A DNA stretch of 64,000 nt from Oculina patagonica (taxonomy: Eukaryota). Shown here piece after piece: positions 20,944 through 26,589 of this stretch (position 1 is its first letter; every line of letters starts with the position of its first letter). A program made the translations under genes and the position numbers. Location: the NCBI RefSeq assembly GCF_052425735.1, contig NC_135764.1, forward strand, positions 18,786,001 through 18,850,000. The letters run 5' to 3'. The notes beneath the pieces are model-generated. The model saw nothing but the letters and a program-made list of their open reading frames with translations. It was not told the DNA's origin and searched no databases.

Positions 20944-23900
20944 ATGCACCGATTATCGAGTCCTCGCTCTGTCTTCACAAGAGTGTTTTATTATCGGAAC
21001 AGTTTCCCTTCCTCGCTGCTATGTGCAGCAACAAAACCCGCAGAGCATCTCATAGAGGAAGAGGCTAACCGCATCACAAAGGATATCAAGGCAAGCCTTT
21101 CATTTTTTTGAGCATTGAGACCACAGTGTGGCTGTGGCTTGAGACCATAGTTGATCGAGGATAGAAATCAACATTAATTTCATATTGACCAGGAAAAATA
21201 ATTTTAATTAATAATTCTTTAAAAAGGTTCAAGGTAAAGCCAACCTACAGTACCTTTGCTTCCGAATGCAAGCAGACTTCCGCTTCGTGTAAATCGGTAC
21301 TCGAATACGGTACTCGATGACTCTCTTCCGAATGGGGATGATTTTATTGTTTCATAATTGTTGTGCGTGGCAAACACAAATCACCACGTGCAAGTTCTGT
21401 AACGCTGTTGAATTGGGTGGTGTTTCTGTTAAAAAGAACTTGGTTTCTGCCTTCAAAATTTATTTGGAAAGTAGTGCTTTAAAAGATTCTCGATTCATCG
21501 ATAGGAAAAGAAGAAATAGCAAAGAGGGCCTCTCAAGAGGGGGGGGGGGGGGGGAAACCATGTTCCTTTGTTCCCAACAAAATTTTCCTTGTGTTCCCGT
21601 GTTCCCTAAGAGTTTTTTTTTTCGATGAAGTCTTTACAAATGAGAATGTGACAATGCGCGTATGAAATAAATCAGCAATTGTGTGAACTGTGGATAATCA
21701 ACCCAAGTGACGCAGTGGTGACGTCGTAAACTCAACATTAACCCTGTTCTCATAAGCTCTTGACGTCCTGAACAGCTGTTACTGACGCACAAATGATATC
21801 AGGTGGCCAAATTCTGCTAAACTGAACTACACACGGAAAACCTATTAATTTCACGGGGCAAAACAGGATTTTCTGGCGTAATAAATTTAAGTATGACCTT
21901 CGCGGCACTGAGCTATCTTTCAAAAAATTTAGCCCTAATAAGGCCAATAGCTATAAAAACCCTCTCCCCCCAACCTGCAAAATCAATGTCCGAAAAAGAA
22001 AAGTTACGTTGTAATAAAAACTTCAAATATTCTACTAGTCACAGGAAGCGTTGGGAAAACCAGACTTGCAGAAGAGAGTACTGAAGTGGGATGAAAAGTT
22101 GCCAATTCCTGACCCTCCCCCACTGAAGAGTCTCTTGGACTTTTTAGTCCGAAGGCGAACACTGTCTTGTTCAAGTGGTTTGCAGCTTGGTTTGAACAAG
22201 CTTCTTGTTCGATCTGCTATCCGTGTCTTGGGACTTCAACGTGCACATGAAAGGTGAACGAGAAAAAAACTTGTAATATCTAGACTGGTGACACAGTAAA
22301 TAGTTCTTTTATATTTAAAACTGGTCCCTTGAGAAACAAATATATTTTTTTCGGGGGATGGAGCTAGGGGAAACGTCGAGATTCGAGGGAAAAAATTGAT
22401 TGGTTTCCCGACTTTAGAAGAACGGAGCTCGAGGCCGTCGGTCAACATTCGCGGATCGCGGTGTACTGTTACCCTCTGACGTCATAGATTTTGCAATGTA
22501 ACCCGCTCAGAGACTTTTGGCGGGAAAAAGTTTTGTTGTTGGAGGAAAAAACTCATGCTTTTCTATTCCAATGCCATTTATCTCCTAGATTTTCTTAAAA
22601 GGGCGTAGGACAAGTGAGGTTATAGGCCGCAACCTTGAAATGTGCAAGTTTACGCAATTATTATGCATTGTAAATTTATGTGACTGCATGTGTGAAATAA
22701 ATGTTATCTTTTATAGAAAACAATTATCTTATTATCCCCAAAGTCCTCTCAGGCTTTCAGTCTCACTTCTTTTTCCTCGTTCACCAAAGGTTAAACACAT
22801 TATTTTCTCTTGGTTTTAACGCATACTAATATATTGTTTTCTTCTGGCCTTAGAATGTGTGAACAGCACTCAAGCGACACTGTACACAACTGTTGGTATG
22901 CGCCAGCCAATCACGGCGACACATTTGGTATCCGCCATGATGAAATATACTTCCACGAAGACATTATTCCTTCACAGCCTGTGACGTCATATGCTGTGCT
23001 GATCCGGGGGAGCCCAGGTAATCCTGGGACATCAGTTGATGGCGGCATTGGAGAAAACGAGAGTTCACTAAATGTTGCTTCGATAAACAACCCAGATGTC
23101 ATGGTTGACCGTGCCGCCTCTCTTGTAGATGGACTCATCATGAAAGCCAGGGATTTTTACATGAGCAGTGAATTTAACCAAGATGTGATCAAGAAGACAC
23201 CACTCTCTATGCAGTGGTATAATTACATCTTTTCGTGCTCTATGCAGTTTCTCCCAGGTTCCATTGAGCGCTACAAGGCCCCTGCAGGTCACTCAAGGCA
23301 CATCATTGTGATGATGCGTGGTAACATGTACAAAATGGATCTTATATACAGCAATGAAGACGGACAAGAGAAGAGAATCACAGGCAATGAACTAAAAGTA
23401 AGTAAAGTAAAACTTAAAGGAGAAGTTCACTCCAGAATGGTCATTTATTTTTTATTTTAAGATATGTTATTCACCAAAATTTTAGCCTCCAACGTTCGCT
23501 ATAACCCTATGAAATCTTTTGCAAAACGCGACAACTGAACGCCGCCATCTTGGAGCTGGTAATGTATGCGTGACGTCAAAGAGCTCAGCCTGAAGTTCGG
23601 AGGGAAAATTTTAATAGTCGAAACTCCTTGTTTTTTGTATTTCATGGAGCTCTGTTTGAGCAAAATGAAGCTGCACAAACAGGCATTTTGTCAAACAAAA
23701 GCCACTACGAAGAAACAAATAGTTCCGAGTATTTATATTTTAAAGTAAGCACTTGTAGATACACATACATACATGTATATAGTATGTAGTGAGTCCAGTT
23801 CACTAATAAACATAATTATATTTATATTTTCCCGCCAAACTTCAGGCTGAGCTCTTTGACGTCATGCATACATTACCAGCTCCAAGATGGCGGCGTTCAG

Positions 23901-26589
23901 TTGTCGAGTTTTGGGAAAGATTTCGTATAACCTGCGTAGCAGAGCGTCGAAAGGGGAGGGAGGGGGAGTTGGGAAGAGGGAGAGAAAGAGAAAAAAAAAC
24001 GGAGGGGGAGTGGGGACGTTCCCTCTTCCCCCCTTCCCCTTCTTCCCCCCTCTCCCTTTCCCTCCCCTTTTTACGCCTGCCACGCAGGCTAGATTTCGTA
24101 GGGTTATAGCGCACATTGGAGGCTAAAATTTTGGTGAATAACATATCTTTGTATAAACTTTTTATTGGCGTAAAGAAAATAAATGGCCATTCTGGAGTGA
24201 ACTTCTCCTTTAAGCCACCAGAAAGATCATTACAGTATCTTTTACAAGGACACGGAGGTTCAGCTTATTTTATCTAGTTTTATCAATTTCAATTTGGAAC
24301 GTCGGCATTTACACACGCAGTTTGAGTGGTTTTCGCGCGAATACTTTCAGTTTACTGTACTTAAATGACACCTGGTACGCATGGACATGTTGGCCAGTAA
24401 GAGTTTGGCAATCACGTGCAATGGACCAGTTATAACTTGCAACTCATCTTTTATGCCCAGAATTGAACATTTTTAAAAAGGTTTTATTATTTGGCAGTGA
24501 AATAAACACCGACGCTTTCTCCAAGGAAATATTTTAGTTACATAAACCCTATGGAAGATTCTTTGGGATATTCCACAACCACCACTTATGGTCCACTTCT
24601 TTTTCTATGTTTACAGAGTCAAATGAAAGATATTTTACAAATGGACGCCTCGAGAGAACAGTCGACTCCGATAGCTGTTCTAACAAGTATGACTCCAACT
24701 GAGAGATGCCAGGAAGAACAACGCCTAAAGTGCCTCAGCGAACGAAACATCACTAATCTCTCGCTTGTCCGCGATGCCCTCTTTGTCGTCGCGCTGGACC
24801 CTGACGAATATCCACAAACAGCAAACGAAGCCATGTTCGCGCTTCATTCGGGAAACTTCGTAAACCGCTGGTATGACAAGAGCGTGCAGCTGGTTGTGTT
24901 CGGCAACGGTGTGGCGGGATTCGTTAATAACTATTTAGCAGGAATGACAGGAACAGTCGGGACAAACTTTGTGCGGATTGCTGTGAGAAATGAAAGGCTA
25001 TACCAAGAGAAGACGGTTAGCGGTAAGTAGTTGTGTAGAGAAAACAGAAACGAGACAAAAAAGAAAAAGAAAAATGGATCAGAAACTGTTACTTATGAGT
25101 GATCGAAAGAAAGAAAGGAAGAACTGATGAATTAATGAAAAATGAATGAATTTATTAATGAGTGAATGAGTGAATGAACAAGTGGTGGAATAAATGAATA
25201 AACAACACTGAGAACATGGCAAAAACTGATATAAAAGAGCGATCGTTGAAAAAAGTTTAAAATTGGTTTAAAACTGATTTTTCTTGTGTAAGTACATCCA
25301 TCTTAGATCAAATGATCATTTGCGAACTACTTAGTTGTAAAATGTCAAATGTTATTTTCACTTTCAAATATTTGATTAGATGATGAAGACAAGATCTGGC
25401 CAGAACCCTTTGCTATCAGCTGGGATGACAGTGCAGACGGATATTTCAAACAGAAGATTAACAGTGTAATCAATACCAGTCGAACATCTGGGCCCTTTAA
25501 GCCGCTGTCTCAAGACGTGTTTAAAATCTGGTCTGGCTCCAGTTTTGAGGAGATGTGTAAGGCGCATCAGGTTACCCCAGGTGGTGCCTTCCAAGCTGGA
25601 CTGCAGCTGGCGCTCGCCAAGATTGCTGGGAGATGTATGAGTGTAAATGAAGTGGTCAGCATAAGGTGAGACTTAATATAAGAAGTGGAAACTATGTTTG
25701 GAAAGGTTTTATAATAATGAAAAACGTAGTCCTAGTTTATCAAAGCCCGTTAGCTAAATGACTTAAAGTTTTCTTCCTTGTTTGCTTACAGCGGGCCTTG
25801 CTGTAAAATAACTGATTTTCATCAACTCATTTCTTTAGTTACACAAGTTTTCAGAGCTTTATTTTCCAGCCGCGTGCGATGTACGATCATTCTTTTCTAG
25901 TTCTTTTTTAAAATATTCCTCGACGTTTTTATTTTAGGATAGGTACTCAGTTTTCTTTATCTACAACATTTGATTCAACGTTTTTCTCTTCCAGGCACCT
26001 TCGGTTTGGCGGAATGACATTAATGGATAGCAGCATGGCGGACATGACGAAATTCGTCGAAGAAGCCAGCAAACCAGCACAACACAGCATTCAAGACATA
26101 AGTGAGCAGGAACGTTCGGTACTGAAAGCTCTGTTGAAGAAAGCAATTCACAGCTACAAAGACGAGGTCCTGCGTTATAAGAACGGTGAAATCAATCTGT
26201 GGCATCTAGACTCTCTTTATAGAAATCTTGGTCTGGCTAATCGTCTTCCGTTCCGAAAAACTCCACAATTTGAACTGAAGAGGAGTTTAAAAGAAGTTGT
26301 ACTGGGATATCTTAGAGCACCTAAATTCAATATACTGCCGCCCCAGGTCGCCGAAAACGTGACATCCAATCCCTGCTGGTATCCTGAAATCGAAGCTATC
26401 GGGAGGCCTGGGGTCAAGTGCATACTGCCACCAACCTCAATGGCGCTGCATTACATGTTTGGGAGAAATGCGATTTCCATCACAGTGAATGCAAATCCTG
26501 ATCATCCTTGTTATAAAAACGAGGAGGAATTTGTCAAGGTACTCGAGAAGTGTTTGCAGTTCGTCACAGCTTTGCTTGATTCAAAATAA
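20944..26589 (+). CDS. Choline/carnitine O-acyltransferase-family protein with divergent active site, ~730 aa, 6 exons (20944-21090, 22039-22253, 22854-23397, 24617-25022, 25380-25665, 25995-26589)
   Basis: Family motifs LPIPDPPPL, PLSMQWYNYIFS, SRHIIVMMRGNMYK, ALFVVALD, NRWYDKSVQLVVFGNG, FQAGLQLA. Phases are consistent (2193 nt). Exon 1 requires a GC donor (AAG|gcaagc) and is the least certain part. Confidence 0.85.
23418..24209. mobile_element. TTAA-flanked MITE (Kolobok-like) with long inverted arms and a nested insertion at about 23929-24091
   Basis: TTAA|aggagaagttcactccagaatgg ... ccattctggagtgaacttctcct|TTAA. The arms match for about 190 bp apart from the nested piece. Confidence 0.8.

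Follow-up and report, generated by a model that had tools for sequence, protein, structure and literature searches.

The window analysed here is the whole stretch of 64,000 nucleotides from contig NC_135764.1 (positions 18,786,001 to 18,850,000, forward strand, assembly GCF_052425735.1) of the coral Oculina patagonica. At 20944-26589, it carries a gene for a protein with the fold of the carnitine/choline acyltransferases (PF00755) and no histidine at the catalytic position. In the canonical enzymes of this family, i.e., CrAT, COT, CPT1/2 and ChAT, a single histidine acts as the general base. Judged by sequence, its loss is the signature of an old clade of the family, and not a local event tied to the cyclodipeptide synthase (CDPS) encoded upstream in the coral. 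We give about even chances to the view that the protein is an active enzyme whose active site has been rebuilt and whose substrate is not carnitine, i.e., a transferase or off-loading enzyme that does not depend on the equivalent of His343. The interest of this branch lies in its being large, devoid of the catalytic histidine and yet strongly constrained, and in its presence in bacterial gene clusters for natural products and, with the candidate described below, in an animal.

The homology is clear. P0153, a protein of 672 amino acids annotated in Oculina patagonica that is 99.9% identical to our gene model and does not include its exon 1, scored 155.9 bits against PF00755 (cut-off, 22.3), which places it in the superfamily. 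When exons were searched singly, the PF00755 match of exon 4 stopped at the residue just before the catalytic loop. Exon 6 gave no Pfam match, yet its product is folded like CrAT in the full-length structural comparison and is under constraint. The AlphaFold2 model had a pLDDT of 86.4 and a pTM of 0.89, with values of ca. 94 to 96 around the replaced loop. Foldseek aligned it over its full length with 28 chains of COT, CrAT, ChAT and CPT2 (E values of 1e-25 to 1e-30, target TM of 0.75 to 0.83), while the next-best matches, C and E domains of nonribosomal peptide synthetases (NRPSs), were far weaker (E value of ca. 1e-6, TM of 0.3 to 0.4 to the C domains). PF00668, the family of the NRPS condensation and X domains, did not match the coral protein, and the likeness of fold is distant only. 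By this model, the protein is a full two-domain carnitine/choline acyltransferase fold, with a predicted central tunnel. The tyrosine that stands for the histidine comes directly after the strand 344-349 (P0153 numbering) and the following T-G caps the next helix, which we take to be the places where the catalytic His and the D-G motif of CrAT sit.

A first-pass annotation of this gene had read NNYLAGMTG for the catalytic motif EHSxxDG, TPG for SPD, NEV for YES, GGMT for GRTE and VTS for STS; all these readings were correct, and the loop lies exactly at 24926-24952. In the HMMER alignment with rat ChAT (1t1u), the N-Y pair is matched with E-H and the T-G pair with D-G, one additional residue lying between the two pairs; TPG falls opposite SPD, VNEV opposite TYES and FGGMT opposite EGRVD. 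VTS aligns to STS. The canonical signature of the catalytic histidine, [ED]-H-[STA]-x-x-D-[GA], is therefore absent. So is the canonical acceptor site, for which we considered YES (Tyr and Ser), GRTE (Arg and Thr), STS (first Ser and Thr) and Phe566. The coral protein has N-E-V, G-G-M-T, V-T-S and Arg668 in their place. The annotation had also described the CoA-binding motifs as replaced, which holds for Lys419 (now Glu) and Asp430 (now Gly). It does not hold for the other three CoA-site residues considered, as Lys423, Glu453 (in YES) and Ser554 (the final Ser of STS) still have their equivalents (roles of the CrAT residues Lys419, Lys423, Asp430, etc. from PMC11852590). The canonical paralogues in the same genome have retained the histidine (NFEHAWGDG on C10, and NAEHAWADA twice on C2). 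With both the catalytic and the acceptor-site features failing, the suspicion that this is not a normal acyl-CoA transferase can be put more narrowly: going by its aligned residues, the protein would be unable to act as a normal acyltransferase on carnitine or choline, or to bind either compound in the known way, and it is to be filed as a homologue, not as an enzyme of that group.

Relatives were found by searching 1.84 billion representative proteins with exon 4, and the 89 full-length ones among the top matches were used. The catalytic histidine was present in 33 of them and two had Arg there; the other 54 lacked it, all with a one-residue insertion in the loop. Phe (29 proteins) was commoner than Tyr (13) at the vacated position, followed by Pro (5) and Leu (3), so that 42/54 have an aromatic residue. 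These 54 are the six cnidarian proteins, P0011 and 47 others, and across them the loop appears to have changed from [ED]-H-S-x-x-D-G to N/S-[F/Y]-x-x-x-x-[D/T]-G. A quick maximum-likelihood search (LG+G4, unrooted, Shimodaira-Hasegawa-like approximate likelihood ratio supports) placed the 33 His-bearing proteins, along with the two reading Arg, to the same side of a branch supported at 100. The six cnidarian proteins and P0011 formed a clade (support, 100) among the His-less sequences, sister to seven bacterial His-less proteins (support, 93). Non-cnidarian relatives that were sampled all lie in bacterial gene contexts, one of them (P0013) from an Acidobacteriota metagenome-assembled genome. 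A recent loss of the histidine linked to the CDPS can be ruled out, as the trait is clade-wide and common to relatives in bacterial gene contexts, and the idea of a neofunctionalisation connected with the CDPS was not borne out, since the motifs on which it was built mark an old clade.

The closest relative, P0011, is 34% identical to the coral protein, GC-rich and located on a compact, prokaryote-like contig, where its neighbours (195, 398 and 743 amino acids) had no Pfam match. A word-based search with P0011 returned P0011 alone, and scans of bacterial species genomes found no close relatives of the clade that it forms with the cnidarian proteins. A bacterial origin of the cnidarian gene, by transfer, is likely. 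No member of the His-less clade has an NCBIfam model, searches of the ESM Atlas and of the AlphaFold DB clusters gave generic family names only, and in the literature searches no publication came up that deals with a His-less clade in PF00755 or with a CDPS cluster in corals.

What the clade has gained is as distinctive as what it has lost. A screen for columns conserved in at least 80% of the His-less set and rare in the canonical proteins yielded four, including two with residues of a catalytic type, Arg668 and His683. Canonical proteins have Phe in the first column and Arg, Gly or Cys in the second. Both residues fall on C-domain strands after STS, and their correspondence to Phe566 and Cys577 comes from a profile alignment to mouse CrAT. 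In CrAT, Phe566 helps to wall the trimethylammonium pocket, Met564 and Phe565 border the acyl pocket, and the DGYG strand that follows faces the tunnel. At such places, Arg668 and His683 would plausibly be directed towards the active site. The first-pass annotation had named an alternative His at the catalytic position of the model as a refuting result, and His683 may be such a residue. STS ends in Ser in 26/33 canonical proteins and in 47/47 of the bacterial His-less ones, and this Ser is Ser655 in cnidarians and P0011. GRTE, present in canonical proteins, is lost in both His-less groups. The Asp of SPD is Val or Asp in the bacterial group and Gly in cnidarians and P0011 (Ala in Nematostella). 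The Glu of YES, Gln in the bacterial group, and the DRHL-like His, absent from it, are kept in cnidarians and P0011, the latter as WHLD.

Several observations indicate that the coral gene is functional. On the plus strand, six exons join in phase into an open coding sequence of 2187 nucleotides (728 amino acids), with a GC-AG first intron and four GT-AG introns. Since RNA contigs from four public runs of three related organisms skip all five introns at the modelled positions and are confined to the exons, the gene is transcribed and spliced as modelled. This agrees with the first-pass reading of a frame of some 730 residues with intact splice sites. A single spliced contig of 2386 nucleotides spans the entire coding sequence; the joint of exons 1 and 2 is present in X3, and in X2 (record 5) exon 1 is spliced to an acceptor that lies 6 nucleotides upstream. 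Among the matches listed, the sole indel within exons was an in-frame deletion of 3 nucleotides at 23135. RNA contigs reach 55 to 85 letters upstream of the start at 20944, and the 5' leader (20859-20943) contains two short upstream open reading frames (ORFs), of 5 and 6 codons, before the main ATG. The first 33 residues are basic and rich in hydroxylated residues (five R+K, no D+E and eight S+T), and they look like a mitochondrial presequence.

The gene is also old and under purifying selection, as the view that it is maintained had implied. Identity to the model is 81% in Orbicella (P0152), 70% in two other corals (P0151 and P0154), 69% in the sea anemone Actinia tenebrosa (P0155) and 37% in Nematostella (P0005), and the intron positions at codons 119, 300, ca. 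436 and 531 are common to the coral gene and Nematostella. It follows from these orthologues and introns that the gene is older than the split between anemones and stony corals. Ratios of nonsynonymous to synonymous substitution (dN/dS; Nei-Gojobori, with the window gene as reference) lay between 0.16 and 0.22 at five coral loci; the value for Actinia, with a saturated dS, was 0.10. The segment around the replaced loop (amino acids 390 to 425) was the most constrained one (0.025 to 0.06); exon 6 gave 0.13 to 0.22 in the coral loci and exon 1, presequence-like, 0.5. The replaced loop is no relic. Orthologues retaining EHS..DG next to a copy that evolves neutrally or is silent were not what we saw; dN/dS was 0.10 to 0.22 and the mRNA is spliced. 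A decaying pseudogene or an annotation artefact, which could be imagined from the last exon missed by Pfam and from the extra, partly broken tandem copies of Orbicella, retains next to no probability. It is refuted by the open frame, the spliced mRNA in three related organisms, dN/dS of 0.1 to 0.2, the 69% identity to the Actinia orthologue and the intron positions common with Nematostella.

Some of the orthologous loci have peculiarities of their own. In Orbicella (L025, 44525-88459), there are several full or partial tandem copies of the gene, some with the last exon split between frames, and the deposited 78-kb "isoform X1" model probably merges them. The true last exon of Nematostella (L021, 15583-15860) encodes MALHY, and thus the C-terminus of the deposited P0005 is mis-modelled. 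A metagenome contig (L027, 86-1795) holds an intronless copy of the coral gene, open for 569 codons and followed by ORFs that, judged by eye, are integrase-like and A32-like ATPase-like. This copy may be a retrocopy or a chimeric assembly, or may come from cDNA in the library.

The neighbourhoods of the bacterial relatives point to thioester chemistry. In the contig of P0047, an ORF of >1561 amino acids is followed by the acyltransferase-like gene and by genes for an MFS transporter, MbtH, a thioesterase, a phosphopantetheinyl transferase and a sulfotransferase. The phylum of one bacterial match, probably Bacteroidota given the type IX secretion system sorting domains in neighbouring genes, carried the gene in 22 of 86 genomes, and all the readable copies (12/12) were His-less. 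At 4 of 14 loci retrieved from this phylum, giant ORFs (megasynthases) flank the gene on both sides in the same orientation, and the Pfam tally of 84 neighbour genes was topped by polyketide synthase (PKS) and NRPS domains. The operon of L066 (G007:C1:1672900-1692600) reads KS-AT-DH-ER-ACP-C-A-PCP, the acyltransferase-like gene, KS-AT-KR-ACP, and C-A-PCP-sulfotransferase. Its layout, with a free-standing His-less gene between two megasynthases, is shared by L068, L069 and L076. Other relatives adjoin an acyl-CoA dehydrogenase and a thiamine diphosphate enzyme, a carboxyltransferase, or an alpha/beta hydrolase, and another one adjoins a possible N-acyltransferase (faint Pfam match).

In the coral, the stretch from 1606 to 33406 is a candidate animal gene cluster (Table 1), and the 454-bp spacer between the MFS transporter gene and the acyltransferase-like gene is probably a bidirectional promoter. 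This head-to-head pair was also found in Actinia and Orbicella. In the Actinia locus (L026) the order recurs, with the P450 orthologue (haem exon 82% identical) followed by the MFS gene (minus strand) and the acyltransferase-like gene. In Orbicella, the CDPS lies upstream of the MFS and acyltransferase-like genes, and the sulfotransferase downstream. The linkage to a CDPS that might have been expected of all orthologues was confirmed in stony corals only; it was not seen in Nematostella, nor in the 10 kb covered in Actinia.

If the protein is an active enzyme, the two-domain tunnel would still be its active site, and an activated acyl donor (a CoA or phosphopantetheine thioester) would probably still be accepted. 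The rebuilt acceptor pocket would suit a polar or anionic acceptor other than carnitine, and His683, Arg668 and Ser655 would take over the work of His343. In hexacorals, it would most likely tailor or off-load a small secondary metabolite, alongside the MFS transporter and the P450. Catalysis, donor and acceptor are all inferred. We favour an active enzyme because the clade is large, its operons contain thioester-handling enzymes and the loop is the most constrained segment, and also because the oxyanion Ser is kept and an invariant His and Arg have been gained. The role in tailoring or off-loading is suggested by the head-to-head MFS gene, the adjacent P450 and, in stony corals, the nearby CDPS and sulfotransferase. 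Membership of a CDPS pathway is a weaker proposition, somewhat short of even, because the linkage was seen for stony corals only, the N-terminus resembles a mitochondrial one and no thioester is obvious in the chemistry of CDPSs. We would go further only as a speculation, and consider it unlikely as a whole, that the His-less clade forms a new functional class within the carnitine acyltransferase fold. In such a class, the base would have been relocated to the C domain (His683, Arg668 and Ser655), and its members would act as free-standing tailoring or off-loading enzymes of secondary metabolism, in bacterial PKS-NRPS systems and, via ancient transfer, in a hexacoral pathway with P450, MFS exporter, sulfotransferase and CDPS.

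Several observations weigh against the active-enzyme reading and its extension to a pathway. The coral protein has lost Asp430 and Lys419 of the CoA site and the Asp of DG. The placement of Arg668 and His683 depends on the alignment to CrAT and on the structure of the latter, and the function of the clade as a whole is read from sequence, model and context. The bacterial contexts are heterogeneous, and the copies embedded in PKS-NRPS operons belong to a subclade different from the cnidarian one. No exon of a CDPS turned up in the 10 kb covered at the Actinia locus, and the Nematostella homologue lies among unrelated genes, with no CDPS or MFS gene within 10 kb. A presequence-like N-terminus would also fit poorly with a P450 whose own N-terminus looks like a membrane anchor. 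The last three points could also be explained if the protein were a metabolic enzyme of mitochondria with no relation to the CDPS, its neighbourhood being a coincidental synteny, and the conservation of the presequence-like N-terminus in corals and Actinia is in line with this. We nevertheless regard it as rather unlikely, as Actiniaria and Scleractinia have the head-to-head MFS gene and the neighbouring P450 orthologue in common, and bacterial relatives are found with a sulfotransferase (in one contig and one operon) and with an MFS gene (in the contig).

That the fold is kept without catalysis, as a ligand sensor, carrier or scaffold (e.g., binding a diketopiperazine or docking the P450), is a less probable explanation still. 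The canonical general base is absent, Phe is so common at its place in the relatives that the hydroxyl of the coral Tyr seems dispensable, and several contacts to CoA and carnitine are gone. Besides, the His-poor X domain of glycopeptide NRPSs recruits P450s. Within the family itself, CPT1C is described as a pseudoenzyme (PMC5934389). On the other hand, the clade is large and consists of stand-alone genes of 600 amino acids within metabolic or PKS-NRPS operons of bacteria, where an inert protein would be unusual. Moreover, no segment is under stronger constraint than the replaced loop, and the new invariant His and Arg with the retained oxyanion Ser resemble a catalytic set. Quite improbable, in our opinion, is an enzyme that re-uses the tunnel for something other than acyl transfer (a dehydratase, isomerase, cyclase or hydrolase), along the lines of the first-pass annotation. 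Most canonical substrate contacts are indeed replaced, the next-best fold matches are NRPS C and E domains, and C domains, related in fold, have given rise to epimerase, cyclase and dehydratase functions. However, Ser655, the Glu of YES, the Lys423 equivalent and the NRWYDK core have all been kept, and the bacterial neighbours are carrier-protein or acyl-CoA enzymes, suggestive of a thioester substrate.

Compared with the canonical enzymes, the active-enzyme candidate from the coral thus combines homology, the two-domain fold over its full length, the NRWYDK core, a motif like LPxLPVP, the DRHL-like WHLD, the last Ser of STS and the Glu of YES with a Tyr for the His, an inserted loop residue and the replacement of the DG Asp by Thr, the SPD Asp by Gly, Phe566 by Arg and Cys577 by His, besides the loss of the Tyr and Ser of YES and of the Arg and Thr of GRTE. 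With the bacterial His-less homologues (P0013, P0047 and those of the probable Bacteroidota) it shares N/S-[F/Y], the loop insertion, the side of the tree and, after STS, the GRxG and xHY motifs. Unlike it, these keep DG and often SPD, have Gln at the Glu of YES and lack the WHLD His, whereas the cnidarian proteins have introns in their genes and ca. 130 extra N-terminal residues. CPT1C, a family member of low activity, shows that the fold can persist in a non-canonical, largely non-catalytic (sensor) role, but it is a vertebrate paralogue unrelated to the His-less clade and keeps the catalytic His and the carnitine-site motifs. The NRPS X domain, a distant fold relative with a disabled HHxxxDG that works with P450s, belongs to PF00668 and is embedded in the NRPS, so that it serves as an analogy only. 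In function, the closest precedent comes from fungal highly reducing PKSs, whose cAT (carnitine acyltransferase) domain is a unit of PF00755 fold in secondary metabolism. This domain is not known to have lost the canonical His and is fused to the PKS, whereas the coral protein is free-standing in a neighbourhood of CDPS and not of PKS type. A PKS-fused copy in the AlphaFold DB was matched by Foldseek at rank 8. According to PMC8582187, which cites Hang et al. 2017, the cAT domain esterifies or releases polyketides. The same paper reports that the NRPS/PKS module of antiSMASH has no profile for the PF00755 (cAT) domain. Should the branch prove to be catalytically active, it would provide a clear example of an active site relocated within a well-studied fold, and also a new enzyme type for genome mining. 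For coral biology, the gene offers a concrete candidate for one step of a diketopiperazine pathway that may be encoded by an animal.

Table 1. Features of the acyltransferase-like gene and of its neighbourhood (positions in the window).
Feature	Position	Strand	Remarks
Cytochrome P450 gene, multi-exon	~1606-8707	-	p450 Pfam matches on exons
CDPS	from 12235	+	PF16715, E = 9.9e-13 on first exon (12235-12567)
MFS transporter gene, multi-exon	16125-20489	-	MFS_1 matches; orthologous exons in L026 and L025
Spacer, 454 bp, between MFS and acyltransferase-like genes	20490-20943	.	start ORF of MFS gene ends at 20489, minus strand
Exon 1	20944-21090	+	amino acids 1-49; presequence-like N-terminus; GC donor at 3' end
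Exon 2	22045-22253	+	amino acids 50-119; KLPIPDPPPL, counterpart of family LPxLPVP motif (profile alignment to CrAT)
Exon 3	22854-23397	+	amino acids 120-300; first part of N domain; PF00755, E = 5e-8
Exon 4	24617-25022	+	amino acids 301-435; NRWYDKS core and replaced catalytic loop; PF00755, E = 2.8e-19
NNYLAGMTG, catalytic loop	24926-24952	+	Tyr406 at His position, Thr411 at Asp position, one residue inserted between
Exon 5	25380-25665	+	amino acids 436-531; VTPGG and VNEVV
VTPGG, SPD equivalent	25571-25585	+	by alignment
VNEVV, YES equivalent	25643-25657	+	by alignment; Glu kept
Exon 6	25995-26589	+	amino acids 531-728; part of C domain; no Pfam match
RFGGMT, GRTE equivalent	26002-26019	+	carnitine-binding Arg and Thr gone
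NVTSNP, STS equivalent	26356-26373	+	Ser655; invariant in 54/54 His-less proteins, usual residue in canonical ones
IGRPGV, Arg668	26398-26415	+	100% in His-less clade; aligns to Phe566 of mouse CrAT
MALHYM, His683	26440-26457	+	98% in His-less clade; aligns to Cys577 of mouse CrAT
tRNA-Ser(UGA)	27385-27469		
Sulfotransfer_4 gene, single-exon	28169-28891	+	1.6 kb downstream; PF17784, E = 2.1e-54; syntenic in L025 and L031
Prenyltransferase beta-like gene, single-exon	32198-33406	-	
Conserved ORF	33486-34226		

The order from the sulfotransferase gene through to the conserved ORF recurs in another coral contig (L031). The Sulfotransfer_4 orthologues in Orbicella (L025, 96299-97008) and in this related coral (L031, 4812-5521) are divided between two frames, with a switch at ca. 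residue 150, and may represent a frameshift or a pseudogene. Intron 3 of the acyltransferase-like gene contains a foldback repeat (23451-24157) with inverted arms of 109 nucleotides (92% complementary) and 67 nucleotides (91%). Contigs of the RNA runs stack over it to depths in the thousands, and thus it is a high-copy, transcribed element similar to miniature inverted-repeat transposable elements. Between the P450 and the CDPS (9001-9536), there is a minisatellite with a unit of ca. 39 nucleotides that opens long ORFs in several frames on both strands. Finally, the block of intronless ORFs at 54993-63992, with matches to Endonuclease_7, the rve integrase and the Pox_A32 ATPase, resembles a Polinton/Maverick-type element.

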